Part shown: positions 16,075-41,436 of the stretch, in pieces
How the letters are laid out: the number at the start of each line of letters is the position of its first letter
Position numbering within the stretch: position 1 is the stretch's first letter
NCBI GenBank assembly: GCA_003693705.1
Contig: RBZT01000339.1
Span: forward strand, 1-64,000
Direction of reading: 5' to 3'
DNA from: Polymyxa betae A26-41
Lineage: Eukaryota > Protista > Endomyxa: Phytomyxea
Length of the DNA: 64,000 nt
Position numbers and translations under genes: made by a program
Notes under the pieces: generated by a model
What the model was told of the DNA's origin: nothing
Database searches by the model: none
What the model saw: only the letters and a program-made list of their open reading frames with translations

Positions 16075-17717
16075 TCATACGAATGCTAATTGAGAATGGT
16101 CAAACTCATCGGTTCTCTTAAATCTCTCGTACCTAATAAATCACATCTTCATTTTCAATTAAAGGTCCGGTTCACAATACTCACGAATCTGTTTTCATCA
16201 GTTCGTAGATTTCGTCCTGTGCTCGACAAAGCAGTTCCGGAATCTGATCGAGGCATTGCAGTCTTAGCTTGTGATTTCGGCCGAAACAAGATCGAATCGC
16301 CAGCAGTAGATTGCTGTTGAGATTCACTTCGAACGGCGCCGACTCTGCCAGATACATGGCGTAGATACGATTGATGTTCATTTCCAGAGCAATGACCGCC
16401 GGCCCTTGAGCTCGGAACCTATTCGAATATTGTTCGGCAGGGTGCCTCTTTTTAAACTGGCTGAGACCTACCAATTCCTGTGGCCAGTCTCCAAACCGCT
16501 ACGACCCGCATGAGACGCTTTCCATCCACCATATTTCATTCGTAGATGCAGCACATCCGAGTAATATCTCCAATTCTCCACCTTACATCCGCGACAGTGA
16601 GTTTTTTGCAAATTCTCTTTAAAAAAACGTTACCGAGAACTCTTTCGTTAAAAAAGTGACGAAATCGTTGGCAATGCCGGTATTAGTATCAAGCATTCTA
16701 CGCAGGTCCACTGTTTTGTTTTTGTAAACGTCTTCGCGAGCGAGCGCGAGCGAATCCTGAAAGTCGCCGGCGTTTGCTGTCGAGGTCAACCCGACAACCA
16801 CCATCGGCATCGACATGACGTAACTCAGTTTCATATCTTTGTAGAGCATCATAAGAGGTCTTGCCAGGCTGACATGAATAGCACGAAGGGCGCACAGATT
16901 CACCGATAATGGCAGCCTGTGACAACATCAAATCAGCACCATGATACGGATTCATGCAATGACAGCCCGACATGATGATAAAGCAGCGGGTCTGCTCAAG
17001 GCTCGGGAACAGCACAGCGATGAACCAGAATGGGAAGGCGCCAATTAGCAGAGTGCCGCCCATCGTTATCAACTCGTTCTTAATCTCAAATGCATCGACC
17101 ACTAGGCGCATATTGTAAGACACATAGACAGCGACCGACAGCAGGCCGGCCAGCACGCCCGACACCCCGAAGAACCACAACCATGGTGATGTGCAGATGG
17201 CAGCCTCGGCTGGTCCCTCCCAGGAATTCTTCCAGCCATTAATCTCGATAAACAGTAGCCAACAGGCGATATGGCAGACGAACGATACCGCCAGGAATAT
17301 AGAGACGGCCCTGTCGGTGGCTAAATGTGTGTGGTTTAGCCACCAATTCTGGTCGTCCAGACTGGCATCGGCTTTCTGTGCACACAGAGCTTTGGAGACA
17401 TGCCAGTTGTATAATAGCAGCCAACTTCTTATCAGATACAGATCCAAAGTGAGCATGCCGAGGACCGAGTTCGTAAATAAAATTTGTGAGCAAGATGGAT
17501 AATGGCTCCATCCATCGTAGCCGAAAGATAATGTCGCTATCATGATTAGGAAATGGTTGACGAGAGCCCATTCGGCTCGTCTCGCTTTCAGCATCGGGTG
17601 CTTGCGCCATCGATAGTAGAACACGGCCAAGATGGGCACCGTTATCATGACAGTGAATATACAAATAACCAGAAGTGTTCTCTGGATCTCATAGATAATG
17701 TCTTCCGCTTGGCCCAT
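16075..17717 (-). CDS. 7TM receptor-RGS fusion protein, copy 1 (apparently intact)
   Basis: Seven hydrophobic segments followed by RGS box motifs FLTKEFSVENW, IYAMYLAESAPFEVNL and AQDEIYELMKTDSYERF; four short introns keep the frame. Confidence 0.9.
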
Positions 17718-18044
17718 CGCTCTACAGGGGAGACTGATAGAATATAGTGTGTACGTGTGCTTGTAAGAAGAATAAATCTCGGTCACCAGAATCCACATTC
17801 TTTATCCACGAAGAGACAAGCCCTGGCGTTTTTCGAGAACAATCGAGTTCTTCCATGATGCCATTCAACGTTCATTTACAGCCTCGATCATTACATCAGA
17901 TTGCTATTACAAACCTGGACCATAGTCGTCTGCAATTTGGACCTTCTGGGATCCCATCCAGCCACGTTGAAGCAACATCTCCTTAAAATTAGTAAGCCAA
18001 GTGACCGCCGAAAGCCTGAATACGACTAAAATTTTCAAAATCCG

Positions 18045-18359
18045 ATGCTGCAGCGATGGATCTTGCCGTGTTTTGGCCGACTGCGATATGTAAAACATAA
18101 AGACGAAGACGATGGCGAATCAGGGACTTATCAGCCTATACACGAGCATGGAGAAGAGACGAACGTATCGCCGAACACCAGCGGCCAATACAGCACAATC
18201 TCTGTCAAAAGCTGCCTGAAATCGAGGCGATTCTCAAGCGAAGGCCTGAGTTCGAAACTGAGCGCAAGTCGGCGCCACGTTCATTTCAGCGACCGCGTCA
18301 TAGTGGTCAATGTCGAGAAGCTCGTCCCGTTCGACGGCGAACACCGCTTGGTGATGTAA
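18045..18359 (+). CDS. Small protein with SILK-like and RVxF PP1-docking motifs
   Basis: 104 aa ORF containing PCFGR, an acidic patch, KSCLK and RRHVHFSDRVIVV. Confidence 0.6.
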   Translation: MLQRWILPCFGRLRYVKHKDEDDGESGTYQPIHEHGEETNVSPNTSGQYSTISVKSCLKSRRFSSEGLSSKLSASRRHVHFSDRVIVVNVEKLVPFDGEHRLVM

Positions 18360-18910
18360 TATAACCCATCCCAATAAACATGTAAAGGCTGTATACAACA
18401 CCTGGTTGCCACAAGATAAAGGGTTGCTCCATTGACTTGGAAATGAAGTGACGGTAGGACATCTTCATGCAGTTTACGTTACATGGCGGTGCCCATTGGG
18501 CTCCGAACGATATTCGAACATCAGGGCTTCGAGCAATCTTCAATCATTCACCCAACCCAAGCAAACAAGTTCTCGAATCTAGGTCACAGACTTCGTGATT
18601 CTTGAAAGCCATCTCAACTTGAGATCCACGCGGCCCAGATCGGCCCGAACTCAAAGGTGAGATTTACCAAGATATTCGATCGTGATCATTTAATACAGGG
18701 GTCAGTGAAGGGATTGAGGTGCGCTTGAGGGCCGACAGAGTCGCATGATTTTATCAGGCTGTCGCATTGGAACGGTGGAGCATCCCGGATCCCTTGAAAA
18801 GTAACGTTACCTCCTCACCGAATGTGAGAGTGATGTGAATTTGATAGCAGCAACTGGGTCATATTGTCCACCTGTCTGCCGCATTCATTCCGATCTAATT
18901 GCATTTCCCG

Positions 18911-19956
18911 ATGGTGGTTGGGTGCCAGGCTGGGCCTGGATTGTTCGCGCCGTGTCTCTGGATTGAATCGGGCCTGGCAGCGGCATTCCATGCCGTCGTC
19001 TATGTCGCCAATGACAGGATCGTGTCTTGTAAGCTGGGCGTATCGGGATGAAAAATTACATTGATTCGATTTTAATTCAGTGTTCTTTCCCAAGTATCGA
19101 CAATTGAACCAGCATGAAAAAACATCGTTTAGATCGAATATCGGATATCTATTCAATGCAGCCGTCTGTCTGGTCTCTATCATCCATATGCTAGTCTCGG
19201 ATTATATTGCTCTGGTTTCTCAAGGTATTTCGCACTCGTTTTGCTAATAGAGAGCATTTATATACGATCATGCAGATCCATTACATGCATATCCTCATTT
19301 ATTATCATATTATGGGCCCGCAATCTTGGGATTTTACGTTTTCAAATTCGTCGGTCAGTTGGCTTATGAAATCCAGTTATCGAATGCAACGGAGATTGTC
19401 ATGAAATCGGATGGAAGCTATAATCGCAGGGCGTCGATGGTTCCGTTAATCCGGCCGTTGCTCTTGTGCTTCATAATCATTCATTCTTTGCATTCGAAAC
19501 TATTCGGAATCTATGGTATCGCGTGGCAATGTGCTTTCATGTTTGTCGGTTTACATTTTGAAATAGGGTTCTTCATAGCGATCATTTCGTTTCAGGAAGT
19601 ATTCGAAGCAGGTTAGTTAATGGATCCGGGATCGTTAAATTCTGATATTCTTTCCAACAGTCACAATGCTATTGAGGTTGACTTTAAAGACAGCCTCTGA
19701 AAAGAGTCGCGTCTACCGAATCGTTAACGCTTTACAGTATATCACCTTCCCTCTGTTACGTTGGCTGTCTGGACCGTATTCCTCATATTTGCTTTGGCGT
19801 CACTTTAGATCGTTTGTTGAAAATGTTTCTTGGCCAGTAATTGCCGCCTACATGATGTCAATGTTTTATGAAAATCTGTACACATTCCTTTTCGGGATCC
19901 AGGCAGTCATCTACATTGTCAAGCCTGATTTCCTAAAGGTTCCTAATATTGATTAA
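18911..19956 (+). CDS. Divergent TLC (TRAM/LAG1/CLN8)-domain-like membrane protein
   Basis: Spliced: MVVGCQ...FFPKYRQLNQHEKTSFRSNIGYLFNA...EVFEAVTMLLRL...SRVYRIVNALQYITFPLLRW; several TM helices in a TLCD4-like layout. Confidence 0.6.
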
Positions 19957-20123
19957 ATGTGTATTACATACTTGGAAGAAAGTCGCAACTCAAATTAAAT
20001 ACCTCTCTACTCTTCATGCCCGAAGATAGATGTACATAGGAGGCCCGGCTGTTGCATCGTGTGTAACCGGCTGTATGACGATTAGAATCGATTCGAATCC
20101 ATTCTAGTGTTCAATTCGAAGCT

Positions 20124-20382
20124 ATGGAAGGCGATGATGTCGAAAAGGTTCATTTCTGGGTCACACTTGTGTTCGTTTCTGATACTTTGGTAGGCAGCTA
20201 TTGTCGAATCCGAGCACTTCGATGTAGTTCTTCCAAGAACTGGATTATTGTTTTCAGAGAAGGGCGATCTCACGGAGGTGCTGTGTAAGCCAAAAATTAT
20301 GGCGATCAAATCTGCTAGTCTGGAAGCGTTAGAACGAGCGGAGAGAGAATCGGCTCAAGGAAAGAACATTCAAAAATCTTAA
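20124..20382 (+). CDS. BBIP1: BBSome-interacting protein 1 (BBS18), two exons, missing from the ORF track
   Basis: Exon 20124-20147, intron 20148-20193, then AAIVESEHFDVVLPRTGLLFSEKGDLTEVLCKPKIMAIKSASLEALE; matches the BBIP1 pattern VLP..G.LF.E....VLCKPK....KS..LE. Confidence 0.88.
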
Positions 20383-20394
20383 TATCTACATATA

Positions 20395-23142
20395 TTATAA
20401 ATGCTGATTTGAAGGTAGAACTTCATCGATGATGTCAAAACCGGATTGAATCATCTTCAACCTATCTTGGACATACGCCCGGTCAGCCCTTTTCATAATG
20501 TGTGGCTCTCGGCATATCTGTTCTATCAGTTCTTCGAACTGATCGGCAGTTGTCAATGAGTTTGTTGGATTCGTCAGAACCGACACAGCTACAGCGGCAA
20601 CAGAAAATTGATAGAATGTCAAAAAAGGACTAGATTTTGCGCTTAATTGAACTCCAAGAAATATCACCCGAATGTCCTCTGGACGAGGACGTGGATCTAA
20701 CGATGACCAAATGGCAGAGAACCCATCAAGGCCGATAGCGATATCAGTTCGTGATATGATCCGGTCCCTGGTTCCAGAAAACGCTACAAACAGCTTCAGA
20801 AGTGTGTCATGATGCTTTCTCAAAGCTGCACGAATGTCAGTCTGTAGGCATCTTAGATAAAATAACTCGCCATTGCTCCAATCCATATAAGGCTGAACCG
20901 TCTTAGACGAGCCCGAACCAAATCGCCTCTTGCAAAATCTGGCGAATTTCTGATGGAACTGCAAAGACGACTTCTTGAAGGCAATTTGAGATGATTTCAT
21001 AATGACGGTGACGAAATCTTCGAAATTCAAGTGATCCGAAACCGTGATCTCCGGCAATAATCGCTCAATTGCAAACGGAGACAGCTTGTCAGATTCGATG
21101 ATGTGGAACTGAATCAGAAATCGCCAAAACTGATCTATGTGCAGACTATCAGATTCGTGCTCCAAATAGGACAGATAGACATCCAGTAGTACATGCAGCC
21201 ATTTCTCCATTCTCGACAGAGCCATGCTTAAATCGGGGACTTTCTGCCCCGACTGTTCCAATAATAGAGCCAAGACTGCTTCAAAGTTGTTCGATCTGAT
21301 GAGGGATTGGAACAGATCGGTTTGCCTCTGACGTATGTCTTGAAGAAGATCTCGAAATAAAACGGACTCAGCTGCAGCATAAGCCTCGTTTGAGATCACC
21401 GATTCAGCATTCATGCTGAGAAGCCGAATGGGATCAAGTTTGGCGCTCACCAGCCACGCCATTGCTGATCGAATTGACAGATCCGACCCGCATGCAATGT
21501 ACTCGAATACATCAGCGTCGAGATCGCTTATTTTCGGAATTGAGTCGTCGATAATACGGAGCTGAATCAAGCCATAGCTGATGCAGCGCTGGAAATACGA
21601 AATCAATTGCATTTGGCATTCTTTCGGATCGTTCCCGAACGATTGTGTTAATTGAGTATTGTACATATTACAGTCCGAATGACCAGGATCTGATTGACGA
21701 AGGCGTTGTGGAAAAAAGTTGTAACTTTTGACGCACTGCTCGAGTTCGAAAAGGCATGAGGTTTGAAACTGATAGCCATCGTTATAGACTTGTAATTGTT
21801 TTGCACATATATCATGCTTTCTTTGAGCGTCCACAAGCTGATACTGTTTTTCGTCTAGCTGCTGATTAAGAGATTTCTTCAGTCTTCTATTCTTGATCCG
21901 GATGGTCTCCGCTTGAGCCATTTCTGTCTCTAGCCGCAGGATCGATTCATGTGAAGCTTCCAGCTTCAGTTTCGCTGTGATCATCCTTCTTTCAACCGCC
22001 CAGGCTTTCCAGAATAACATCGTCGACTTCAGGCTGACTTTAGATTTGCGCGAAGCTTTGATACGGTCGAGGTATTTCAGCATCACGAGCCGTCGCCGTC
22101 GAGCTGAATCGGTGAAAGCATTCAGTTCGCAAAATACAACAGCCTTGATATGCTGTTGCCATTTTAGCACAACCTTTTTTGTCTGCAATCGCCACTTTTC
22201 TGAGCTTGATGTTTTTCGTTGAATTCTGGACAGGGTCTCTTTTCTGTCGCGAGAATATTGTCGAGCCAATACCGAGGCAGTTCGATTCAAGTCTAGCAGC
22301 TCTTGAAAATATGGCCGATAGCCAAGTGATCTGTCCAGTTGTAATCTGCCGGAGAATAACGAAAATCCAATCTGTTCAGCTAAATCTGAGAAACAATCAA
22401 CCGACGGCAGATATGTTGATGAAACCTGTATGACCTAGAAGGAATGATGACTGGCTATGCAAACTGCATAATCGAACAAGCATATCGTAGTAGACCCAAG
22501 CTATTAATTTGTGAGGCTTGCGTAACGATTCGGTAGCCATTTGTAGCTCATTCAAACGGAACAGAAATGACGACACAGACAGCTTCGACGATTTGACATC
22601 ATTTTGGTACTGCTGAATCCAATCCTGCAAATTGATCACGAATATATCGGAATCGATATTCTCCTCGAGCTGGAGGAACGCCAGCAGCTGGTCTGGACAT
22701 ATTTGAAATTATCGAATGGTTCAACTGAGACCTTTTTACCACTGAGAATCGTAGGTTCGACACGCTGATCTTTGTCTGGAATAGAAGTTGAGTCCCTATA
22801 CTTGTATATCTTATTAGAGATATACGGATCCTGTAATGTGGTAGCTGTTGAATGGTGTAAACTGAAAGGCTTGCAAATCGCATGCTTGGAGTGCACCCTA
22901 TTTTGTTTAATTAAAGGAAGTCCGGGAGTCGATGCTACTTTTGACAACTGCTTCGGACGAATCCTCTTCCATCTGTGTAATTCTGTATTGGTATTCGATC
23001 TAAGCAAAGTTTTCGAAGCATGGCAATGTAGTGCCTGAGCATATTGTAGTGTCTCACTTTCCGATGCTACCATCATAGACACAAGTATTATGCAACTGTA
23101 CTTCGACCTCAACAGAGTTTTATTACGAATACAAAAACCCAT
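20395..23142 (-). CDS. Large uncharacterised coiled-coil protein with C-terminal EF-hand-like segments; start uncertain
   Basis: 631 aa terminal ORF plus upstream exons; coiled-coil stretch; LNFEDFV and LTFYQFS EF-hand-like helices. Confidence 0.65.
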
Positions 23143-23159
23143 GATGGATCCAGAGCCTT

Positions 23160-24173
23160 TTACTTGCTAACTACAGGTATGCCGTCGAGTAACAGCTCGT
23201 GCAGCGGCGATCCCGAATCCATCATCTCTTCCGAAGACAACGAATCTGAATCGTCAAATGACGAGTGATCAGAACCTGAAGGCCGCAACCCCAATTCAGC
23301 ACTCTGCTGCGTAACGTAACTCATACAAGACAGACCTGCTGCTGATGATGATGGAGGTTGCCCCATGTAGGATCCTGACGTGTAGGCGGGACCTCCTGCA
23401 ATTGAGCCGCCGTATCCTTCATTCATCTTTGCTGTAGGTGATGTGTAACCAGAACCTGGGGTCAATGGCTGAGAGATATAGCTGGAGCCGGATGTCGATG
23501 GTGATGGTATCGAGCCAGAGCCAGAGTAGCCGGTGCTTCCGGTTGGAGACATGTAACTGGAACCCGAAGTCGACTTGCACGAGCTAGAATCGGAAGCAGC
23601 AGACTGATGACTGACTCGACTTGCAGTGGGAGCAGTATTGTAGGATCCAGCTTGGCTCGTTTGCGTTCCATACGAGGCAGAGCTTGGTCTAGCTTGGCCA
23701 TAGGACGCCTGCGATTGCGGAATGATCATAGGCTGAGATAAGGCACGATCTTCAATGATGTCGTCTACGACGTTGTCATAGATGCAGACCAATACAATGC
23801 CTGCGCCGTACTCGGAACCGAATTGTTGGCTACAATCGGCTTTGGCGCAACCGACTTTCTGGATGGCTTGAAAGCCAGATGGGTAGGCCTGATAGCTTCC
23901 CGCCGTCCTTACCAGAGCATTGCACGATTGACCCTCACCAATACTTGTCCCTGGTTTGGGACAAGTAAGAGCTAATTGCAACGCCTGGTTTTCCAGTTTG
24001 GGCGACCAAGATACGGGCGACATTCCCGCCTGTTGCCGACCCCGATTGCAGATGCTTAAAAGCTGCTGCTTCTCCATTCGGGTCGTGAGTACGACGTTTA
24101 GGGCAACATCGGCATCGTTCTGTGCACGATTTGAATGCATCAGGAAAACAGCGACCAGTAGCAATCGCAGCAT
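23160..24173 (-). CDS. Secreted CAP (SCP/PR-1)-like protein with Ser/Gly/Pro-rich tail
   Basis: Signal peptide MLRLLLVAVFL; LLSICNRGRQQAGMSPVSWSPKLENQA, KVGCAKADC and LVCIY; intronless 337 aa. Confidence 0.78.
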   Translation of the reverse strand: MLRLLLVAVFLMHSNRAQNDADVALNVVLTTRMEKQQLLSICNRGRQQAGMSPVSWSPKLENQALQLALTCPKPGTSIGEGQSCNALVRTAGSYQAYPSGFQAIQKVGCAKADCSQQFGSEYGAGIVLVCIYDNVVDDIIEDRALSQPMIIPQSQASYGQARPSSASYGTQTSQAGSYNTAPTASRVSHQSAASDSSSCKSTSGSSYMSPTGSTGYSGSGSIPSPSTSGSSYISQPLTPGSGYTSPTAKMNEGYGGSIAGGPAYTSGSYMGQPPSSSAAGLSCMSYVTQQSAELGLRPSGSDHSSFDDSDSLSSEEMMDSGSPLHELLLDGIPVVSK

Positions 24174-24454
24174 TTCGTACGAAAGTTTGAAAAAATTGGT
24201 TTGGGATAAAACGGTTGGTTTGAGATGTTAGTTCCATCTTCCGGTCATGATAAGAATATCAATACCCTTGTTTCGTGAGTCAACCTCGTTCCGGAACCCA
24301 GAAACGTTCCCTGACCGTTCCGATTTGATCGTTCATGACCACCGACTGTGGTCCGATCTGGAAGCCGTCGGTGGTCCAGATTGGTTGCTATCGGTTGCAT
24401 CAATTTGACTTTGGGAAGCTATGAGTGCTCGGAATATTCATAAGTTTTGTCGTA

Positions 24455-25249
24455 ATGCCATCGAATCCACGTCTGAAGCTAACGTATTTCGATATCAAGG
24501 CACGTGCCGAACCCATTCGCTTGGCGTTATTCATAGGCGATATCGACTTTGAAGATGAACGCATCACTTTCGAGCAATTTAAAGACGTGAAACCGAGCTT
24601 ACCGTTCGGGCAGCTGCCAATACTCAAAATCAATGACGACCTCGTTCTCACTCAGGTGAATTTATTCACATGTTGCTATAAAGTTGAAGATTTTTTTTGT
24701 AAATCACGATTAATTAAGTTATGTAGTGTTCACATTTTCGATTTAATCCATCGCTTACTGAAATCCTGAATTCTCCGAATATTGTTGAGATTGATAGATT
24801 TTTATTAGTCGTCGGCTATTGCTCGTTATTGTGCAAAACTGGCCAAGTTGTATCCAGACGATTCTCTTCAAGCCGCAAAAGTGGATGAATTCATCGGTGC
24901 CTGCGATGATTTCTCCGAAGAAATATCAAAATCCATCCATGTTGAGCATGAGCAGAAGCAGAAGATGCGACATGAATTCTCCAACAATTTCTACCCAAGA
25001 TGGCTCAACTATATTGAGAAGCTGTTGAGCCAAAACCGATTCGATTACTGTGTAGGAGATAGCTTGACATTAGCAGATCTCTATCTCTACACGCATATGG
25101 ACTATCTGGTCTCTGGCATCTTGGAACAAGTTCCAGGTGACTTAGCTTGCAAAAAGGAACAAATTCGTAAACACTTCGACATGATCAAGAGCAACAAAAA
25201 GATCTGCCAATGGAACGATAAGCATGCATCGAAGAGCCCCCAGATATAG
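24455..25249 (+). CDS. Glutathione S-transferase (sigma-like)
   Basis: KLTYFDIKARAEPIRL, LPFGQLPIL, TQ|SSAIARY and VGDSLTLADL; intron about 24656-24808. Confidence 0.93.
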
Positions 25250-25314
25250 ACGACATAATTGCTTGGTTTTGTTACAAATATAATGTGTGTGAACGATTCG
25301 TCAAACAATGTTGT

Positions 25315-26661
25315 TTATCGACGTCTTCGTCCATGTGAATGTCGCCTATCGTATCGTGTCGACTCTTTATCATTTTTATCATGATGAGAGCGGTCATAGG
25401 AACGTCGCCGACTGCGACTTCTTGAACGACGCCGATCATATTCACGTGAACAGCTGCGGCTTCTGTTCCCAGAGTAATGTTGCTTTGTGCCTCGTGATCT
25501 CGAACGAGACCGAGAATATCGTCTGTCTCGGCTTCTGCTTCTGGAGCGATCGCGGGTGGATTCTGTACACTCTTTGGAAACGGTGGGTTCAGGCTCAGGC
25601 ATGGTTGCCGCCAATTCTTCAGCCTCCAAATGTGCAGCTGCACTTTCGATCAATAACTGATGATCATCTTCGATTTCCTAAGACATCTTCAGCGAGATGG
25701 TAAAGCAGATTTAACATTTATGAGACCTTGAATGCGATTTTATCAGCATCGTTGACAGGAGTGTAAAATAGAGGCTTCTCATGATACATTTTAGCCATCA
25801 GTTTGCAAATGTGCAGTAGTTCGTCTTTACTGGAACCGAACAGTTCATACCAAGGCGGTGATTTCGGTAATGATAGCTGCAGCATGCGTGCTGCAAACAG
25901 AATCGATGCGGAAGCGATAGCTTCTGGAGAATACCTTAAGCAATCGACGGTAATTTCGAAATCATTAATTAAGTTCCAAGAAGTCTGCAGCGTATCACAG
26001 TAAGAACAAAATGAAGAACGAATCAACAGCTGACCTGAGCTAATTCTCGACCGCCGTTTAATCGCTGAATATACGAGAGAAGGAATTTATGTGGGTGGGA
26101 TGTGTAGACCATAAATCCTAATGTTGATAAAAGCAACTGTTCAGATGATAACATAGCCGATCTCCATCGAATATATTGCTAATAATGACAACTTGTTAGG
26201 CCGGACAAGCTAGCAAACAGCTACAAAGATGTACATTGGAGTTAATATCGAGTATGGAGTCTGGCAGCCCATAATACGAGTTCAGCAGCTTATGGAAAAC
26301 CGATAAAATGTCGCGAATCTTTCTTCTGGTCTCTTCGATCTTCGTGGCAAGAAACACGCAGGTCATTGTCATTATAACCAATGGATCGTGACCAGACATT
26401 GGAACTCTGCAATAATATCGATGAAGCAGAACCTAAGAATCTCATCACAATCCAATTTACTCTTGGAGATCTTCATACCTGAGCCGTAGCGCATGTCGCC
26501 CTTGGAAGCTCCAACAGTATACATGCATCGGCAATGATGAAGGCGGCCCAGCGTCGATTACTTGCTTCTGCTTCCGGATCGATGCCTTTCAGAACGCTCC
26601 GGTAAGTGTCTTCATCTAATGTCAGCTGCATCCGATCGAGCTCCATCGTCATGGCGACCAT
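25315..26661 (-). CDS. Cyclin L (cyclin boxes plus C-terminal RS domain)
   Basis: ATCATAQV, CVFLATKIEETRRKIRDI, HPHKF, SWNLIND, PEAIASASI and RSRSRS tail. Confidence 0.9.
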
Positions 26662-27054
26662 TGAAGCGATACACGCAGATACACAACAACAAATGCGATG
26701 AGTTTTTATATTGGTATTGAGCTACTCCTATTACAGTATTATCAGTCTTCAATTGTAACTCATCATATTCTCTTTTCCATAGGCTTCGGTCTTGTTGTAT
26801 GGCATTTCCACAGAAATTTATCTCTTGATGTTTGGTTGTGGTACAGGAAGGCAAGATTTAATGGCCATGAAACGACTAATCATAAATCATTTATGAGAAT
26901 CCAAACCTAGTTGGAATAAAAGTCATTATGTAATATGAAGCCGAAAAGAAAGCAAGAGCCGATCGAATTAGCTAAAAAGCCCTATATACTTATTGAAACT
27001 GATCGCGGCATTTCAACCTGGAAATCATTCATCTGTACTTATCTGGAGACAAAG

Positions 27055-27243
27055 ATGACCGCTCGAGGCACCATTGTCTTATCTGAGACCGAAATCGAAC
27101 TTATACTGGACGCTCTTGGGCCGCCAGAGAAGCCAGAATCACAAGCAGGAACTAGCATACCTGAACCGGCCGTTATGCTTCGAGAGCGGCTGGTCGCGCT
27201 ACTCCTACAAATACGCAAGGAAGCAGAAAAAAGATCCAAATAA
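27055..27243 (+). CDS. Small hypothetical helical protein (62 aa)
   Basis: MTARGTIVLSETEIELILDALGPP...LRERLVALLLQIRKEAEKRSK; protein-like composition; fills the gap between two genes. Confidence 0.45.
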   Translation: MTARGTIVLSETEIELILDALGPPEKPESQAGTSIPEPAVMLRERLVALLLQIRKEAEKRSK

Positions 27244-27291
27244 GTTCGAATTTTCGAACCATAAACAGTATTGTTTATTTCGACTGAAAGC

Positions 27292-29697
<2,406 letters not shown>

Positions 29698-30726: not shown

Positions 30727-31408
30727 GGTGATGGCAATGGCTCTGGTTAGGGAGTGAGCCCAACCTAGTGCACCCTTAAGGGGGGTATTTAGGGGAAAGG
30801 TCTGGTCACGGTGAAGGTCTGAGCTGACGACTGGTGCTCCTGTTACAATGCCGACGCGTCGCATCTAATAACCACTTGCTAACCTTCGTCGGTCACTTGT
30901 TAACAATTCTCCCAACAACTGCTTTGTGTGATGAAGGACGGCCGTTCCCTTGTTAGATCTCCATCCACATTCTGCATTTATTTCCGAATCTTAATAAAAA
31001 ATAAACTTCCGAATCGGTTTATGGTCCGCCGGGAGTCGTCATTTATCTATCGCAATGCACTGCGTTGGGTTTAGACAAAAAAAAAAGATCACCTCGTCAT
31101 CTACATCCCCAGGTTACTATTATGATTATATAAAATCTTTTGAAAGTTGTCTAACCATAGCAAACTGCAACCTCATTCGATGGCATTTGTGCTGTTATGG
31201 CATTAGTTTGAATTGTACTGTTTAGAGCTGATAGTCACTTAGAAGATTAATCTGGATAATGGCGGGATCGACGCACTCATATGAACACATTCATAAAGTG
31301 TTTTCCGTCTTGTACGTAAGGTAGCGGCTGGTTTCCAATTGTCGAGGCATCCTACTGCTTTGCCTATGATCGCTCTCGCTAACCAGATTGTGACGATATA
31401 ACTAATCG

Positions 31409-32801
31409 ATGTCGGCTGCTGACCCGCTGCTGGCCGGTGATTCCAGGCCTTGCCCATGTCAGTCGACAAATTTCTGGTGTAATCAGATGCGACCTTGCAT
31501 CATCTTTTATATCTTGCTTAGCTCTCTCTCCATCATTGTATTAAAATTCGTTAATTATCGGTGAGTCTTTGCAACAAATTGTCACTTGTCTCATCTCTTC
31601 TAGGTATGAATTAGTGCTGCCATTGCTATGGGCAATGATATCTGAAGCGACATTCATCATATCATTTCCCATGTTTTTTGCCTTTCGGCAGAAGGGATTC
31701 CTTAGGAAGTTCATGCCATCTGTTCGGATATTGTCTATATGTGCTGTGATAGGGCTTGGATATACCATTTCCAAATCAGCCATCTCGTATGCAGAAAGTA
31801 TTTTCAAACGCGAAACTTGCAGTTGGTCTGGCTTATATCGAATTAGATGTGCTTCCTGGATCAGTCTTCGCCATAATCTCTTCCTTGGATATTCTTTTCA
31901 ACGGGATTTTTAGCAGCATTATTCTGAAAAAGAGGCTCTCAAAGAGTAATAAGATTGCCATTCTATTTATACTCTGTGGAGTTTTGCCAAGTGCTATCTC
32001 CGATATTGTAATAGCACCAGAGCATCATGGCGCTGTTGATAAAGCCCAGAAAATCACTGGCCTGACCTTAGCGCTCTCGCTGCCTGTCGCCTTATTTGGC
32101 GTCGCTGAAGAATCGTTAAGTACCGTTTTCTCGTCGTACATCTTAAAAAAGCGATTCTTGGAGGAAGGCCATCTGTCCCTAGTGGATACGGCCGTATCAA
32201 TCGATTGTAAGATGAATTGTAATTTATACAGCATTTTTAGTGAAATATGGTTGCAGCATCTCAGCTAAGTGATGACAGCTGCACAGACAACATCTTGTTC
32301 ATAATTCAGTATTCCTCTTGGGTGTCGTTTTTCGCATTCACAGGCATGCTAATTCCGCTGGTTGCCTCCGGTGAAGCGAAGATTTGGAAATCTGTCCTGG
32401 TTTCAGCATGGACTGGTTCAGGATCTATCAAGCATGCTGGATTCGATGCAGTTATTGGTTTATCGTTAGCGGTTGTGGCCACTCTAGGCTCCCGAATCTA
32501 CATGCGTTGTGCCAAATATTATATCTGTTCGTTGAGAACAGCATTCACGTTTAGTGTCGTCAAACCATTGCCGAAAATTCTCGAAGTAATCGTTCTGTGT
32601 TTCGGGTTGGGTGAAGTCATAACGTGGCAGAAAGTATTCGGAATGGCCATGGCAGCTATCGGCTTTATCATACATGTTCGTGGAGAACAGGCTGAAATCA
32701 AGAAGTCGTATATCGATAGTGGATCGTCACCATGTCGATGCCATGAAGGTCACGAACCTCTTCTAACTAGTGTTGAACCCGATACAGATTTATTTATTTA
32801 A
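31409..32801 (+). CDS. DMT-superfamily transporter resembling plant purine permeases (PUP)
   Basis: About 10 TM; LPGSVFAIISSLDILFNGIFSSIIL, VSFFAFTGMLIPLVASGE and GEVITWQKVFGM. Confidence 0.7.
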
Positions 32802-32822
32802 GCAATACATATTATACAGTGT

Positions 32823-33469
32823 CTAGGACTCAGTCCTATCTATGCTATCTTTCTGATCGCGGAAATACTTTCTCATATCGTAGGCGTCTTCACCATCGGC
32901 ATAGTATTTCGTTTCGATATCGCGCTGGGCGTAGCCCAACGTCTTTGTGTACAGATGGAAGGCACCGGCGTTGCTCTTGCGAACATGAAGAGACACATAT
33001 TCAGCTTTGAAAACGTGCTCCATGGCGTGCTGAGCGGCCCTCATCAACTTGGTGGCAATTCCCATCTTACGATGCGTTCTTAGGACGGCCAGAGAAGTGA
33101 TGTGTCCATGCAATTCTTTAGAGTCCTCCTCCCTGAAGGTGATATCAATGCTACAGGCTGGCATTGACCAGATCAAATACATTTTGGCAAGAACGTAGCC
33201 GACGATCTTTCCGTTGAAATCTTCAGCAACAAATGGTAGCTGTGGCCATGACAGGATATGATAAAGGTAATACTTCATCTCTAAGCGAGAACCAATTCAC
33301 TTTCAATTAAATTACAAATAAGTATAAATACATACGATAGTTTTCTGGTAGGCATCTAAATTCCAATCATTAAAAACAGAAAACGTTAAAGAAACGCGTT
33401 TTCATACAGAAGATTGCAGTTCTGCATTTCGAGCAGATCATTGATAGTACATTGCCGAATGCACACCAT
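32823..33469 (-). CDS. NAA10: N-alpha-acetyltransferase 10 (NatA catalytic subunit, Ard1)
   Basis: MQNCNL.CLPENY.MKYYLYHILSWPQL, HGHITSLAV, VSLHVRKSN and KYYADGEDAYDM. Confidence 0.96.
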
Positions 33470-34585
33470 TCCTCGGACGATACGGTGTCACGATGAAAAC
33501 TCAGCAAACGTTCAGGGCGGATCCGAGACGCCAACGATTCGATCAGATCCAATAAGGACAACCCTGCAGGTTGTTGAATTCTCCGCGAACCGTGAGACGC
33601 TGCCGAAGACTGATCAAAGGTGCGCATTATTATAGATGGCTCTATATGGCTGGCCTGCCAGTACATACCATCCTCTTCCCATGGACGTTTGTTAATTGTT
33701 TCTGTATCTGGGGATCCAGCGAGAGCAGAGCTTCGTCTAGCTGATCGTCTTATTCATAGGATAGATAAATTCGTGGTTTGCTTTAGCAAGAGTTGCGTTG
33801 AGAATCGCAATCATTACCGAGACGATGACCGACCATTTGATTGCTTGTCTTTGTTACATTTGTGTTCCAGATAAAGCTGTATTGTTTTAATAATTGTCCT
33901 GATTTCGGTTATTCTTGCCGACCGTCCTATCCACATCAATGAGAGCACACTAAATCTGATGCTCAGCTCGGCAGTCGTCGGGCGGCCTGCCACAGTTACG
34001 ATGCTAGCGCTGTTTAGCTCAAATTTGTGAAGCCAAATCATTTCGATTGGTGCCCAGCTTCATCCCGTCTTTTTTACCAAATTTGCTATCAGTGGCATCC
34101 CTTCTGCATTTGTATCGCTTCAGTTTCTTCGCATTGTTCATGGCCGGAAAACTTTGGAACCATTCTCTTGATGAACCGTGGTCTCAACTTTAAGCTAGCT
34201 GGCTGCCATGCTGGATTGCGAAGTTCTGCTTGGAATGAGATCGAGTGAATGAGGAAATCAGCGACAGCAAATTAACCATCAAAGAGGCAGCGGCCTCCCT
34301 CATTGAAATGGCCCGTAACATCACCAAAAGTCATTTCAGGCTGCATGCTGTCGTGGATTGGTCACTTTACTAAGTAGGAAAGATGCCCGATTTGTCTTGC
34401 TGATTGGCGTTGGAGCCAAACAATCAACAGCATACCTCGTTCCCATCGTAACGCCGAGCGATGGATGTTTTGCAGCAATGGTCAAGATTGTCATAGATTC
34501 CGATCGATCAGCTCAATGATATTTAGAAGGTACACGTCGATGGCCGCCATGTGGACGTCTTCCAGTCGATCGTCTCCACGACATC

Positions 34586-36821
34586 ATGGAAAATGGTTCG
34601 GCACAAGATGTTATATATACCATTCAGGTGGCTTCGCTTTATGTATGCATTCTTTGTTCTATTTCCGTGTTAATCTTGTCGGTATTCTATTATCGTTATA
34701 GACGCCATCCAATGCTGAAAGCAAGGCGGGCTGAATGGTCATTAATATTTCAGTTTCTTATGATCATCACCATGAACCCCTATGCCTACGATGGATTGCA
34801 GCGTTATCCATGCTGTGCACAGATTCTCTATACTCATGTGGTTTTATCAACGCTTACCCTTGAAGCTCATATTGCCCGCTGTTGGCTTCTCCTGTACAAC
34901 TGGAACGTTTCCAAAGCGTTATGCGCCGTCCAATTTGAACAGAGAGAATCCGACAAGAACTGGTGGCTTCAGCATACTTATCTGGCTTCCAACAAGGTTA
35001 TGGCGATGGTCATGAGCATTGCAATCGTTTTCCATACTTGTTTCTGGCTGTTACTTTGCCGTCTCAATGGATGGGATCGATCTTTCCATGAGCCAGCACA
35101 ACTCTTAATTTGTACATCTCTGATGTTATTCATGTTTGGGGAACAGGTTGTGCTGGTTCTTCTGATGCTTCTTGCAATGTATCTTTCGTATAATATGCGT
35201 CTCATTGTCGACGTTTTCGAAATCAGAAATGAATTGATGGCTTCTGGGGGGATATGGCTGTATTTTGCAGTGCCTTGTTGGGTTGTTGCCGCTTTGTTTC
35301 CGAGCCTTATGCAGTATCCCAATTTCATCATCATGTATACAATACGCGCCTCGGCTTGCTTCACCTGATTTGTTCTGATACGTTCATAGGATGACATTAT
35401 CGGTGAACTTATCTGGTATTCGTGTGCTGTATTTAATCGTTGCTAAGCCTCTCATGATGATCTATGCAGAGACACGTGACCGCTTAAAAATGCTTGACCC
35501 GACAACTGCCGTGTTGGGACAGGTTCGACTGTTAATGAAGAAGACTCTTCTCCGGGAAGCATGAGATTGTCGTTCCATTCAATTAAGCGAAAGCATAAAA
35601 ATATTAAAGAAGTGGGACTTCGTAAGATGCTGGACACGAACACTGGCGTTGCCAAGGATTTTGTTAAGTTCTTGATCAAAGAGTTCTCGGTAAGTGATTG
35701 GCCGCAAGCCTGTGTAGAGCCATCAGCTAACCCTGATCGGACTCCGTGGTGGTATATATTATATACCACAACGATTTTTTGAGCGTTATTCGAAAAATAT
35801 TGGGGTTACGGAGAAATTTTCTAACGACAGAATGAAGAACAGGAAATTTCCTATCGAGGTATACCAAAAGTCGCACAAAAATGTTTATGGTTGCAATTAG
35901 AAACTCTGTTGATAATGACCATTTTCGCTCAATTTACCGCACGCACCTTTGTATGCGGCGGTGCGGCGGTATATATATTATATACCGCCGCTGGATAGAG
36001 AAAATTTCATGAAGAGTCCATTTTGGTCTCAGAAGCATACCCCAATCAACCTATTCATCCCCAGCCAAGTCATCATTGAAAAAGAGTCCAGGTTAGCAAT
36101 TACGTCAGAATCAGCCAACACACTTTAGTAATTAGAGGCACCTTAGCAATGAATGCCAGGTAAATTGGCCATGGCTAAAATATCTCATAAAAAATATTGG
36201 TGCAAAATTTCAGTGTCATTAATTTATTAGATTAGTCGTTATGATTGTCTAAAAATCAGGCTTTTTGCCTCGTGGCGGTATATACTATATACCGCCGGGG
36301 GGTTCGGTGATTTTTGGAAAATTGCGTGGCGGTATATACCGCCGCTCGGGGCTAAATCTTTTCTGAGGTTGAAAACTGGAAATTTTATTCGGATGTATTG
36401 CAGCTGCGTATTTTATATGGGGGGTGGAAGCATGCTGATTCAGGTTTAAGCGGTTTGGAATCAGGCCATTTAGATTGGTTCAAAGCACAAGGTTCAGCAG
36501 TGATTTCTTTGGAAACCAACATTAATCGAATCTATTCGATGTACCTTGCGGACTCGGCACCATTTGAAGTCAATCTGAACAGTCAACTGCTGAATATTAT
36601 TCGAATGTGCTTTGATCCAACAACGAAACTGAAGGCTAATTGTATCAATGACATTCCTGGATTATTATGCCAAGCACAAGATGCGATCTACGATCTAATG
36701 AGAACCGATTCGTACGTGCCTTTACCATTGCAATGGTTAATGAGCTTATATGGTTGCTTGACAGATACCCGAGATTTAAGCGTCGCCCGAATTCGACCAG
36801 GTTCAATTGGCATTAGTATAA
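34586..36821 (+). pseudogene. 7TM-RGS copy 2 with two apparent 1-nt deletions and an intronic mobile element
   Basis: Exon 2 read from 35391 meets TGA at 35562-35564, while the RGS half continues in another frame; second frameshift near 36780; could be assembly error. Confidence 0.65.
35731..36351. mobile_element. 621-bp non-autonomous piggyBac-like element (MITE)
   Basis: CTAA direct repeats at 35727-35730 and 36352-36355; CCC...GGG ends with imperfect TIR (ccctgatcgg vs ccccgagcgg); four internal GG(C/T)GGTATAT..ATATACC palindromes; removing it restores a 53-nt intron. Confidence 0.8.
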
Positions 36822-37163
36822 ATCAGCATTCCATCGCATGGTATTCCAGTTTCTGCTGTGACATGTTTAGAATTAAGGGGGTCGCTGATTTGAGATCGTT
36901 CGTTCTGGAACGAATGCCGATACAATGGCAGTCAGCAAACATGTTGTTGGTCATATTTTTCATGTGTAATGAATAAATCCAGATATCAAGAGGAGACCAT
37001 AGATTAGCGTTTTAATGTATTTTTTGAACCCAGAAATTCACACAGATCAGAGTTCTTATCTCTCTCCTATCTGACTATCTCGCTCATCTCTAGCGTTCTT
37101 TCTGTCTGTTCACTATTCTAACCCGTTGGGCACCACACTGGCTTATTCATGCAAATAGATGAA

Positions 37164-37420
37164 ATGCGCCTTTCTTTGCATACCGACGAACGACCATACG
37201 CCTGTAATTAGTGCAGCTAACAATTCAAAAAGCGCAAGGCAGTTTCGCTGGTCTTTTGAGTACTCGTATACCGGTGAATAAGAAGGCGGAAGTGGAGCTT
37301 GATTTTGGAAAAAAGTTCAACGATATGCTCGACCACATGTCATCGCTCTACCCGATGCGTTGTGATAAAAGTCCCTTTGAGCATAATTTGTACAAGCTCT
37401 CCATATACGTACTTCCTCTA
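37164..37420 (+). pseudogene. Decayed C2H2 zinc-finger array relic
   Basis: HTDERPYACN*CS*QFKKR at 37179-37235, then YTGE* and CDKS...LHIRT fragments in shifted frames. Confidence 0.55.
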
Positions 37421-37741
37421 TAAAGTTCTGAAATTTATATCACTTTCAATTAAAGCTTCATAGGTGTTAAAGATTGCGAGCCAGACTTATAAAGCGATTC
37501 ATGAGCACAGCTGACATCAGCCAGACTCAATCAGCCGCTGCACTGCTACTAGAAGCATATCCAGGCTCACTCTAGGCTAGCTGATTCATTGCGAACATGT
37601 ATTAAATATCATATCAAAGAATACAAAAGCGCAAGGCTCAGAGAAAGGTAATCGATTCACGTGACTTTGCATCCAGATCGCTTAAGATATTACTGGGCTG
37701 GTAGTAGATGCATGTATAGACAGGCTTAATCCTATCCACTA

Positions 37742-39361
37742 ATGGATGAATCATCAGGTGGGGATGTCATTTATAGTATCCAGAGAACGCTGATCGTCGT
37801 TATGGTCTTGATTATAACTATATCTACACCAATATTATCAGCCACATACTATTACTATCGTCGACATCCCATACTGAAAGCCAGACGGCCAAAATGGGCG
37901 ATACTGAATCAGCTGTTCGTCATGCTGGTTGCCATAACCTTTGGGTACGACGGCTGGCAACATTATCCTAGTTGTGCCAAAATCTTGTTTACAAGCTCGG
38001 TTGTCGCCATGGCGGGCATGGTAATGATTTCTGAAGATACAAAGCTACTTTCTAATGTAAAGAATGATTTCAGGATTCGCACATCATTCGTAGCTGGCTT
38101 CTGTTGTACAACTGGAACGTCTCGAAAGCGCTCTGTGCGATGAAATCAGAAGACGCCGAATCTGAGAAGTCCTGGTGGCTGAACAATACCCATCTTGCTT
38201 CAGATGGAGCCATGGCCAGTCTAATGGCTGCCCTATCATGTTCCATATAGGATATTTGGTTGTTACTTGCGGGGAGGCCCAGCCGATTCTGCCATTTGCA
38301 CATCAGGATGGTTATGGTTCTTTGGAGTCTGGGGTGCCATTTCCTGTCTCATGACCATCGCTCTCTATCTAGCATATAACTTGCGTCTTGTAGTTGATGC
38401 ATTCGAAATCAGGAGCGAGTTGATGACGACCGGGGCGATCTGGATCGTTGGCGCCATGCCGTTCTGGTTGGTTGCCCTGCTGTTCCCAGTCTCGAGGAGA
38501 ACCGACATTTTACGATCATGTCTGTATTGGTCTGCCATTGATTATCATTGTTTTTATCATTGTTCATAGGCTGGCTTTATCGGTGCCCATATGCGCTCTG
38601 CGTGTTCAATATCTATACGCGGTTAAGCCTTTGTTGATGATGGCTAATGAAATGAAACAACGAAGACAATTTGAAATATCAACTATCGCTGTCATTATTG
38701 GCTCTGCAACAACAGCGTCGCCTGAAGGCATCGCTCATAAATCGAATGGAACTGTCCGGGTTCGTGCTAAGGGAGCTCAGGTCGAGCTTCGAGAGATGCT
38801 GGACACAAACACCGGCATCGCTAACGCCTTCATCAATTTTCTGACGAAAGAATTCTCAGTGATTTTGATTAAAGCCAGTCTCGGTGTCCTGGACTGATAC
38901 GGTTTGCTAGGTTGAGAACTGGAAATTTTACTCAGAGATTCTACAGCTGCGAATGACTTACGGGGATTGGAAGGAATTAGATGCAGGCCTAAGCGGCCTG
39001 GATTCAGGACACCTGGAATGGTTCAAAACGCGAGGTCCTGAAATCGTTGCTCTTCGAGAGAGGATCAATCGAATCTATCTATGTATCTGGCGCAGTCGGC
39101 GCCATTTGAAGTTAATCTGAGCTCTGAGCGTTTGAAAACGCTTCAGCAATGCTTTGGCTCAGATCACTTGCTGAGGCCTGAACGCATGGACGATATTCCA
39201 GAAATATTATGTCGCGCTCAAGATGAAATCTATGAGCTGACGAGGACAGATTCGTACGTTATTGTTATGCGTGTTTGCCGCTGCATACTCAATGATTCAA
39301 TTAGAATGGGCGATTCAAGACTACAGCTGATTTCGATGAAGCTCAGTTAGCCCTGGTTTGA
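37742..39361 (+). pseudogene. 7TM-RGS copy 3 with several frameshifts and a deletion
   Basis: In-frame TAG at 38248-38250; INGWDQSW segment missing relative to copy 4; further 1-nt frameshifts near 38488 and 39306; private intron 38021-38073. Confidence 0.78.
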
Positions 39362-39850
39362 ATTGCTAATCGAGCTTATCTCCTCCGGAAGGTCGTCTCA
39401 TTTCTGGTTGCGAAGGCCAACGGAACTCATATTATTCAGCTAATTTTTGTATAAAAATGCTACCAACCGATGAAGCCTCCAATCATGTTAAAGTGTCATT
39501 TTTGCAGAAGGAGTATCTAACTTCTGAATACAAACAGGCTTTATACAGTGACAACTAAGTGAACCAAACGTTGAAAACTTTACAATTGTTCGATCCCACG
39601 TGTGATTTCAAGGTTTTATTGCAACGTTACCATGACAGAAAGGGGAGTCTCTGCAGGCAGCAACGAATACAGTAAAACAGTTACATTGGTTGGGCCTGGC
39701 TTCTAACGTAGACACAGTGTATAGGACCAGAAGCTCATCCTCATAATTGTAAGCCATAGATTTTAGAGGTATGTATGCAGAGATATTTATGTCCATACTC
39801 GTGACAAGAAAATCGCACACGTCGATTACGTTTGACATCTCCTACCAGAA

Positions 39851-41436
39851 ATGAATGGAGGCTCGATAGAAGAAATCATATACAGTACTCAAAGGATACT
39901 GATCTTGGCCTCGGTCTTGGTTATTGCAACCACTGTTCCTGTATTATCTGTTGCATATTACCGTCAACGTCGTCATCCCATATTGAAAGCCAGACGAGCG
40001 GAATGGTCACTATTGAGCCAACTCTTCGTGATGATTGCCTCGATCGCATATGGATATGACGGATGGCGCCATTACCCATCATGCGCCCAAATTCTGTTCA
40101 CGAATTCGGTCCTAGCGATGCTGGTGTTTGATAGCCACATTATCAGATGCTGGCTTCTGCTCTACAACTGGAATGTCTCCAAAGCATTATGTGCCTCGCG
40201 AACAGGAGACATGAATTCTGGTAGGAACTGGTGGCTCAGGAATACACATTTAGCTTCCGGCAAGATTATGGCGAAGGTGATGGGAGCTTTGACCTTGATG
40301 CATATTGGCTGTTGGTTGATCTTTATTGGTATCAATGGATGGGACCAATCATGGGGAGGCCCAGCCGATTCTGCCATATGTACATCGGGATGGCTTTGGT
40401 TCTTTGGAGTCTGGGGTGCATTAGCATGTATGATGGCAATCGCTATCTATCTCACATATAACATGCGTCTGGTCGTTGATGCATTCGAAATCAAGAACGA
40501 GCTGATGACGATCGGCGGGATCTGGGTCGTCGGTGCCATGCCATTCTGGCTGATTGCGCTTATTTTTCCGAATCTCGAACAGAGCCGATGCTACATCGTA
40601 ATGTCAGCTGTTAACCATGGTTAGCTATTTCAGCTCTTGATGTTGTCAACAGGTTGTCTTTATCGGTGACGCTCTGTGCATTGAGAGTGTTTTATCTGAG
40701 TTTGGCGAAGCCACTACTTATGATCAATCAAGAAAACAGGCAGCGCAAGTATCTTGAGCTCTCATCTGTGGCATTGGGAACGACTACAACGGAAGCATCA
40801 GATGGCATTATTCATGCAATTCCTGCTGTACGTGGCCATAACAATCTAAAAAAGGTCGACCTTCGTAAGATGCTGGACACGAACACTGGCATCTCGGGCG
40901 CTTTTGTGAACTTTTTAACAAAAGAATTCTCAGTAAGTTTTCTAATATCGCAAGGATAATTGCGACGTTCTTATACTTGTATCAGGTTGAGAACTGGAAG
41001 TTATATTCCGATGTGTTGCAGGTGCGAATGATATATGGAGGCTGGAAGGAATCCGATGCCGGCCGAAGTGGTCTTGAATCTGGCCATTTAGAATGGTTCA
41101 GAGTTCAAGAAGCTTCAATTACGTCTTTAGAGGAGAAGATAAATACGATCTACAATATGTATCTAGCGGAATCGGCACCATTTGAAGTCAATCTGAGCAG
41201 CGAACGGCTGCGGTGCCTTCGGCAATGCTTCGAACCATGTCATTTACTGAAGCCCGAATGCTTTAACGATATTCCAGAAAGATTATGTCGTGCTCAGGAT
41301 GAGATTTTTGAACTCATGAGATCTGATTCGTTAGTGATTCTCGCCGGTGTTGCTGTTTAGGACTGAATAGGTATCCAGGTTCGAACGATTCAAGAAGACG
41401 GCTGAGTTCGATCACGCCCAATTAGCATTGGGATAG
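39851..41436 (+). CDS. 7TM receptor-RGS fusion protein, copy 4 (apparently intact)
   Basis: Four exons splice in frame: 7TM region plus FLTKEFSVENW, YLAESAPFEVNL and AQDEIFELMRSDSFERF. Confidence 0.9.

Follow-up and report, generated by a model that had tools for sequence, protein, structure and literature searches.

A stretch of 64,000 nucleotides from the draft genome of Polymyxa betae A26-41 (contig RBZT01000339.1, in the assembly searched here C931:1-64000; henceforth called the window) carries several paralogous genes in which a seven-transmembrane (7TM) domain appears to be followed by an RGS box. This raised the question of what type of protein these genes encode, and whether they form an expanded and undescribed receptor system as an earlier note on this DNA had proposed. 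To judge from sequence, the window loci probably represent a subfamily of class C-like 7TM-RGS fusions that bears introns and is specific to plasmodiophorids, most likely receptor-type GTPase-activating proteins (receptor-GAPs). The assembly searched comprised 27,085,814 bases on 1001 contigs (about 45% G+C, introns of about 50 nt), and the published P. betae draft genome is given as 1,001 contigs with 27,085,946 bp and 45.1% G+C (PMC6328671). Gene models were read from the sequence junctions, and both the searches and the fold prediction were made exon by exon.

Gene models and domain order

Four paralogous loci were located in the window, i.e., g1 (17717-16075, minus strand), g2 (from 34586, plus strand), g3 (from 37742, plus strand), and g4 (39851-41436, plus strand). 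The positions reported for them in the earlier note were borne out by the open reading frames (ORFs) and their translations, and the outermost coordinates, 16075 and 41436, were real stop codons (of g1 and g4, respectively). A fifth copy, g5, was found on contig C714 (locus L001). Among the four window copies, only g1 and g4 had intact reading frames, obtained via short GT-AG introns of 49-55 nt (Table 1). The exons of g1 summed to 1431 nt (introns of 55, 52, 53, and 52 nt; product of 476 aa) and those of g4 to 1434 nt (introns of 50, 53, and 49 nt; product of 477 aa), each sum being divisible by three.

Exon 1 was open in each copy over about 250 codons and encoded a 15-residue N-terminus followed by six long hydrophobic helices (TM1-TM6); the seventh hydrophobic segment, 23 residues in length, was split by intron 1. 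The very short N-terminus (about 15 aa) and the seven transmembrane segments described earlier were thus recovered, six in exon 1 and the seventh across intron 1. The first loop was rich in Arg/Lys and was for this reason placed on the cytoplasmic side, with the N-terminus outside and the C-terminus inside. In g1, g2, and g4, intron 1 lay inside TM7 between the second and third bases of an ATG codon, intron 2 immediately past ..KEFS, and the last intron between the second and third bases of the codon for Ser in ..DS. The same intron positions were common to g5 and to a homologue on an environmental contig. Taken together, the intact protein would probably be about 477 aa long, with a 15-aa extracellular N-terminus, a class C-fold seven-helix bundle, a cytoplasmic linker of about 60 aa, and a C-terminal RGS box.

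The environmental homologue (L025; ENA metagenome ERZ25039503:contig_29387, 4001-5900; 41% G+C) was 38% identical, had the same exon order and intron positions, and was presumably derived from an unsequenced plasmodiophorid relative. It had been divided by the gene caller into a transmembrane gene and an RGS gene.

The membrane domain and its relation to class C receptors

The motifs singled out in the earlier note were all present, i.e., R+HP.LKARR in the first intracellular loop (ICL1), YP.C at the first extracellular loop (ECL1) and TM3, ICTS in ECL2, and VD.FEI+.EL at ICL3/TM6. Family-wide, in an alignment of 19 sequences, they took the form R..(Q/H)P(I/L)KAR.P in ICL1, YPC before TM3, the Cys of ECL2, and LR.VVD.F.IK.EL at ICL3/TM6, and five residues were invariant in all 19 sequences (R48, C78, R99, C177, and E217 in g4 numbering). 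The proposed Cys pair at the TM3-ECL2 disulfide position in G protein-coupled receptors (GPCRs) corresponded to the invariant C78 and C177, the ECL2 Cys being aligned to that of mGlu6. Mean identity among the copies was highest in ICL3 (81%), and TM3 (65%) and ICL1 (60%) were likewise among the best conserved parts; this conservation points to a cytoplasmic interaction surface maintained in the window family. The extracellular loops, which had been described as differing between copies, were 70% (ECL1) and 56% (ECL2) identical versus 25-31% for TM1, TM2, and TM4; their divergence had been overstated.

A profile of exon 1 was searched against 1.84 billion representative proteins and yielded 31 matches. 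Seven of these were close ones, in genomic fragments without annotation that evidently stem from plasmodiophorid relatives. Most of the matches of 400-550 aa that were scanned carried Pfam 7tm_3 at the N-terminal and RGS at the C-terminal side, and the gathering score of 7tm_3 (33.5 bits) was exceeded by three of these relatives (P0010, 39.2 bits; P0017, 39.7 bits; P0031, 44.0 bits). Named sources of the relatives were Mataza (Cercozoa), Ploeotia (euglenid), Basidiobolus, and Thamnocephalis, and two of the proteins were single ORFs from transcriptomes. The family profile also matched a genuine 7tm_3 locus of the same genome (C536; E-value 9.6e-5), and in its alignment with mGlu6 the ECL2 Cys and the R.V.D.F..E.K region of ICL3 coincided.

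For g4 exon 1, an AlphaFold model was calculated from the 19-sequence alignment (predicted local distance difference test score (pLDDT) 84.3, predicted template modelling score (pTM) 0.82), which superseded an earlier run with seven close sequences (pLDDT 59.6). The model had the helix-bundle geometry of class C receptors, and in the Foldseek comparison CaSR and GPR156 ranked at the top with class A receptors close behind. A feature search of the ESM Atlas likewise led to early-fungal clusters with 7tm_3 and RGS. From profile matches and predicted fold, we conclude that the exon 1 domain is a putative 7TM bundle of class C type, divergent in sequence and lacking an ectodomain. Word-based protein searches returned one fragment for g4 exon 1, nothing for the g1 read-through ORF, and two known fragments only for alignment A5; an annotated full-length orthologue was not found in these searches.

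The RGS box

Against Pfam RGS (cut-off 23.9 bits), exon 3 alone scored 24.6-27.5 bits in g1, g2, and g4, and 13.2 bits, i.e., under the cut-off, in g3. These scores were low because the domain is split over three exons and contains an insert of about 30 aa, located between the VENW-bearing and the INRIY-bearing helices. In the alignment with the relatives, shown for g4, the tail of exon 2, exon 3, and exon 4 tiled the entire RGS box, and the motifs EFS/VEN, (F/Q)VNL, and DS.(E/P)R(F/Y) were kept. A phmmer search of exon 3 against the PDB sequences gave a chance match only. The earlier statement that each copy has a complete RGS box held for g1 and g4 and largely for g2; it failed for g3, where the box is broken by a frameshift near 39080 and the last exon is out of phase.

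Genome-wide repertoire

Throughout the genome, 37 RGS matches were found, and a multi-TM ORF precedes the RGS part at about 30 of the 37 or more loci. At about 25 of 30 RGS loci examined outside the window, an ORF with 4-8 hydrophobic segments (by crude hydropathy) was located directly upstream or was the same ORF, and at two more loci, both on contig C355, the family profile matched upstream of the RGS box. Intronless ORFs (n = 10 tested) had RGS scores of 29-69 bits, and the N-terminal domains of 15 intronless members fell into a single cluster. When this cluster was compared by hhalign with the window family plus its 7tm_3 relatives, a probability of 99.6% was obtained (E-value 5e-24), versus 92.7% with the window family alone. 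In total, the genome contained about 30 class C-like TM-RGS loci (including the five subfamily copies), about 9-10 G-alpha genes, and about four canonical 7tm_3 loci. The expanded 7TM-RGS family of the earlier note therefore exists at the level of the organism, with about 30 loci genome-wide; the four-copy cluster of the window is not where the expansion lies. This genome-wide dominance of TM-fused RGS genes is more notable than the small, half-decayed cluster in the window.

Local clustering was also seen in the intronless subfamily. Six RGS matches lay within C355:36000-98000 (L009, L010), in four cases inside one ORF of 380-610 aa whose N-terminus was multi-TM, and RGS pairs were found on C176, C868, C469, C71, and C620. 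The last of these contigs carries three RGS loci and, at C620:73391-80015, two canonical matches to Pfam 7tm_3 that score 124 and 129 bits. A distance of 5 kb separates them, and their open frames, about 1000 aa in length, probably encode class C receptors with large ectodomains. On the contig of the window itself, 23 kb past its end (C931:87385-87735; L003), an RGS match of 59 bits was located in an ORF of 246 aa that was not preceded by a multi-TM ORF; it looks like one of the few RGS loci that are not membrane-fused.

Decay, age, and selection

In the DNA alignment with g4, exon 1 of g3 showed a private GT-AG intron (38021-38073, 53 nt), a net deletion of 26 nt in TM4 that reaches a TAG, and a 1-nt deletion near its end; further lesions were a frameshift of 1 nt near 39080, within the RGS exon, and the out-of-phase last exon. 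With four or more lesions that break the frame, including one in the RGS box, this copy is a pseudogene. In g2, two frameshifts were found, one in the linker of exon 2 and one in the last exon. Divergence at synonymous sites (dS) was saturated between g1 and g4 and divergence at nonsynonymous sites (dN) was 0.2-0.4, from which it follows that both of the intact copies are of old age and subject to purifying selection. For g3 versus g4, dN/dS was 0.14-0.18, and g3 has on this account been under constraint for most of its past evolution.

One tract of the neighbouring copies g3 (38273-38497) and g4 (40355-40580), spanning ECL2 to TM6, was 82% identical at the DNA level (dS 0.63), versus 61-64% (dS at least 2) for the remainder of the two genes, which suggests gene conversion between them. 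Copy-specific GT-AG introns of exactly 53 nt were present at different sites in g1 (16419-16471, minus strand) and g3 (plus strand). Copies of one mobile element were considered as their source and rejected, the two sequences being unrelated by eye; independent intron gain looks like the origin of both. Intron 1 of g5 (L001, G000:C714:21000-25500, approximately at 1910-2390, minus strand) contained a tandem repeat, with the translated unit NVSFKHNAFFPL present 4-5 times, and this copy carried additional introns, one in ICL2 and one in the RGS core.

Proposed function and alternative explanations

In the proposed mechanism, the 7TM domain would hold the RGS box at the membrane beside the approximately 9-10 G-alpha subunits, where the box would speed up GTP hydrolysis and hold G-alpha in the off state. 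This brake would be lifted by a signal that reaches the helix bundle or the conserved cytoplasmic loops; candidates for it would be phosphorylation, a small ligand within the transmembrane pocket, or endocytosis of the kind seen with AtRGS1. As far as sequence can tell, the assignment of the fusion genes to the receptor-GAP type made in the earlier note is supported. There is precedent in Naegleria, where the RGS boxes of the 7TM-RGS proteins serve as selective G-alpha GAPs (PMC9283941), and in Aspergillus, where the class VI receptors have RGS domains that work by GAP activity (PMC13308352). A wider proposal would make receptor-GAPs on a class C 7TM scaffold the main heterotrimeric G protein input of the organism, since about 30 such loci stand against about four canonical 7tm_3 receptors. 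Each of them might dock G-alpha in the manner of a GPCR and switch it off by its own RGS box, since the class C-type cytoplasmic loops are strongly conserved, and would then be a covalent, possibly ancestral form of GPR158/GPR179-RGS7. We hold this wider proposal to be rather unlikely.

A number of points weigh against the receptor-GAP assignment or against parts of it. The window proteins had no match to Pfam 7tm_3 at an E-value of up to 1, the only meaningful matches of the family profile among the PDB sequences, mGlu6 and mGlu4, were marginal (E-value 0.01-0.03), and the predicted sequence link from the window family to class C runs through intermediates. The AlphaFold model spans g4 exon 1 only, without the full TM7, the linker, or the RGS box. 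The window proteins, with an N-terminus of 15 aa, lack the large ligand-binding ectodomain (a Venus flytrap, either alone or together with a Cys-rich domain); such an ectodomain is typical of class C receptors and not strictly defining, as some animal orphans, e.g., GPR156, do without one. Half of the window copies (g2 and g3) are decaying, and the cluster is not obviously under demand. The correspondence of EFSVEN, F/QVNL, and DS.xR to the G-alpha contacts E87/N88, N128, and D163/R167 of the RGS4-Gi-alpha1 complex is one that we assume, and the insert of about 30 aa in the RGS box is a further adverse point. The splice junctions, finally, are predictions from sequence logic and comparison. 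This last point bears on the explanation that 7TM exon and RGS exons belong to separate genes lying side by side and that their fusion is an artefact of reading raw DNA, in keeping with the automatic splitting of the L025 homologue into two genes. Yet TM7 itself is interrupted by intron 1, the exon phases match at all junctions with sums that are multiples of three, and order, strand, spacing, and intron positions are kept in five paralogs and L025; moreover, more than 15 paralogs of the same genome have the transmembrane and RGS parts in one uninterrupted ORF, and the transcriptome-derived relatives are single ORFs. We give hardly any credence to separate genes, and the gene models have good support at the level of sequence. 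It is also very improbable, if slightly less so, that the RGS box serves as a scaffold and has no catalytic role, as in G protein-coupled receptor kinases (GRKs) or axin, with the proteins signalling as ordinary G protein-activating class C receptors. The marginal scores of the window copies (24-27 bits), the insert, and the conservation of ICL2 and ICL3, the G protein contacts of class C receptors, would agree with it. However, the low scores are accounted for by the three-exon split, the contact motifs (EFSVEN, VNL, and DS.xRF) are kept in paralogs and distant relatives, and the insert presumably belongs to a loop at that end of the helix bundle which faces away from G-alpha.

A serious rival, though in our estimate an unlikely one, is that the proteins are ligand-independent tethered GAPs, or dimer partners that provide the canonical large-ectodomain class C receptors with their off-switch, i.e., a covalent version of GPR158/GPR179-RGS7. 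The 15-aa N-terminus leaves no ectodomain, canonical 7tm_3 loci are available in the genome (two of them in the approximately 1000-aa open frames on C620), the cytoplasmic loops ICL3 and ICL1 are among the most conserved parts (81% and 60%), and in Aspergillus oryzae the RGS domain alone rescued the phenotype (PMC13308352). In a mere anchor, however, the good conservation of ECL1, ECL2, and the invariant Cys pair would be unexpected. The proposal of the earlier note, a diversifying chemoreceptor repertoire whose variable loops read different host cues through ligand-controlled GAP activity, is improbable. The approximately 30 multi-TM-RGS loci in several subfamilies, comparable to the 28 of Naegleria (PMC9283941), and the local birth and death of copies typical of chemoreceptor families would fit such a repertoire, but in the window subfamily the extracellular loops are better conserved (56-70%) than the lipid-facing helices TM1, TM2, and TM4, and the intact copies are ancient and under purifying selection. 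For these reasons, a diversifying array is unsupported here; the subfamily also has five members only, two of them broken, and the g3/g4 tract looks homogenised rather than diversified. Sensing of host cues in zoospores or resting spores is pure conjecture.

Coordinates of the features

Table 1. Exons, introns, and lesions of the four window copies, with the basis of each assignment (positions of the window; TM, transmembrane helix)
Feature	Position	Strand	Basis
g1 exon 1: N-terminus of 15 aa, TM1-TM6, beginning of TM7; phase 2 at its end (AT/GT)	16972..17717	-	ORF, translation, donor read from sequence
g1 exon 2: remaining TM7, linker of ~60 aa, first RGS helices (MLDTNTGIA..F..FLTKEFS)	16634..16916	-	translation; corresponding g4 exon aligned to RGS N-terminus of 7tm_3-RGS relatives
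g1 exon 3a: VENW.. and lineage-specific insert (YGGWK..SGLE.GH)	16472..16581	-	read from sequence
g1 private GT-AG intron, 53 nt, phase 2; not in g2 or g4	16419..16471	-	excision restores W + FRAQGP.., colinear with g4
g1 exon 3b: RGS core (IY.MYLAESAPFEVNL ... AQDEIYELMKTDS)	16185..16418	-	Pfam RGS 25.5 bits
g1 exon 4: YERFKRTDEFDHSQLAFV and stop	16075..16132	-	read from sequence
g2 exon 1: TM1-TM6, open	34586..35334	+	ORF, translation
g2 exon 2: 300 nt, 3n+1 needed; frame broken in linker (~35515-35560), stop 35562-35564	35390..35689	+	exon phases
g2 intron 2: 678 nt vs 52-53 nt in g1/g4; extra DNA is an insertion	35690..36367		sequence comparison
g2 exon 3: RGS core, open	36368..36711	+	Pfam RGS 27.5 bits
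g2 exon 4: 1-nt frameshift past YPRFKRR; conserved EFDQVQLALV tail replaced	36765..36821	+	sequence comparison
g3 exon 1 remnant: private 53-nt intron, TM4 deletion with in-frame TAG, 1-nt deletion near 3' end	37742..38505	+	DNA alignment with g4
g3 exon 2: TM7, linker, RGS start; open	38571..38858	+	ORF, translation
g3 exon 3: RGS core, 1-nt frameshift near 39080	38911..39253	+	Pfam RGS 13.2 bits, under the cut-off
g3 last exon: ..RFKTTADFDEAQLALV and stop; phase does not fit exon 3; start approximate	39304..39361	+	sequence comparison
g4 exon 1: N-terminus, TM1-TM6, start of TM7; part modelled	39851..40602	+	AlphaFold pLDDT 84.3, pTM 0.82; class C GPCR matches
g4 exon 2: remaining TM7 (LSLSVTLCALRVFYLSLAKPLLM), linker, RGS start	40653..40932	+	ORF; alignment with relatives
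g4 exon 3: VENW, insert of ~30 aa, RGS core	40986..41329	+	Pfam RGS 24.6 bits
g4 exon 4: (S)FERFKKTAEFDHAQLALG and stop	41379..41436	+	read from sequence

Significance and comparison with known systems

The gene models given here are the first gene-level description of G protein regulators in the unannotated draft genome of P. betae, the vector of sugar-beet rhizomania, and provide candidates for the sensing machinery of plasmodiophorid zoospores. Since nearly all RGS genes of this parasite are apparently fused to class C-like seven-helix domains, P. betae would offer a compact natural system for the study of receptor-GAP signalling and of its relation to class C GPCRs. The literature search retrieved no paper joining Plasmodiophora, RGS, and GPCR, one comparative-genomics paper on Plasmodiophora GPCR signalling lying outside that search. 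The expectation of an undescribed system was nevertheless not upheld, as 7TM-RGS receptor-GAPs, their expansions, and their resemblance to class C receptors have all been published (PMC9283941, PMC3971589, PMC13308352, PMC11580166, PMC4608122). Architectures of this type are known from plants, Trichomonas, many bikonts, chytrids and early fungi, ichthyosporeans, and filastereans, and in rhizarians RGS has radiated independently (PMC3971589); an origin of the class C GPCRs in a 7TM receptor that carried RGS has already been proposed (PMC4608122).

The proteins of Mataza, Ploeotia, Basidiobolus, and Thamnocephalis are homologous to those of the window over the whole 7TM domain (R..QPIKAR.P in ICL1, YPC, RCW, the ECL2 Cys, and LR.VVD.F.IK.EL) and in the RGS box (EFSVEN, QVNLP, and DSFPRY), and have the same length and domain order, but are only 16-22% identical to them. 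These protist and early-fungal relatives reach or approach the Pfam 7tm_3 threshold, which the window proteins do not, and those scanned are continuous single ORFs, whereas the window genes contain three to four short introns. By architecture, two further groups can be likened to the window family. Naegleria fowleri has a large lineage-specific 7TM-RGS expansion (28 genes) beside a multi-gene G-alpha family (PMC9283941); many of its proteins carry large adhesion-type ectodomains (EGF, lectin, GPS), which the window proteins lack, and 79 of its RGS proteins fall outside the 7TM class, whereas nearly all RGS loci of P. betae follow a multi-TM ORF. In the fungal class VI GPCRs (GprK/GprR, MoRgs7), a 7TM domain likewise precedes an RGS box, and genetics place their function in the GAP activity of the latter (PMC13308352); they have been reported in Ascomycota and early-diverging fungi, not in Rhizaria (PMC12842992).

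AtRGS1 and other plant 7TM-RGS proteins share the short N-terminus, the N-terminal seven-helix domain, the linker, and the C-terminal RGS box, and the same receptor-GAP logic is proposed for the window proteins. The 7TM domain of AtRGS1 has been reported as structurally closest to the class C GPCR mGlu1 (PDB 4OR2; PMC11580166). A sequence link to plant RGS1 was not obtained, all seven of the 31 profile matches that have a named source coming from protists or fungi; AtRGS1 itself was not compared. In its own genome AtRGS1 is single-copy, versus about 30 loci here, its RGS box differs from the present one with its insert of about 30 aa and EFSVEN signature, and a response to glucose, phosphorylation, and endocytosis are known for AtRGS1 only. 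In animals, the orphan receptors GPR158 and GPR179 bring RGS7-Gbeta5 to the membrane by means of a class C 7TM domain and end G-alpha signalling; there, RGS is a separate, non-covalently bound protein and the ectodomain of GPR158 is large, whereas here the RGS box would be on the same polypeptide and an ectodomain is absent. Set beside these systems, the window genes are an unannotated subfamily within a known receptor type and not a new kind of system.

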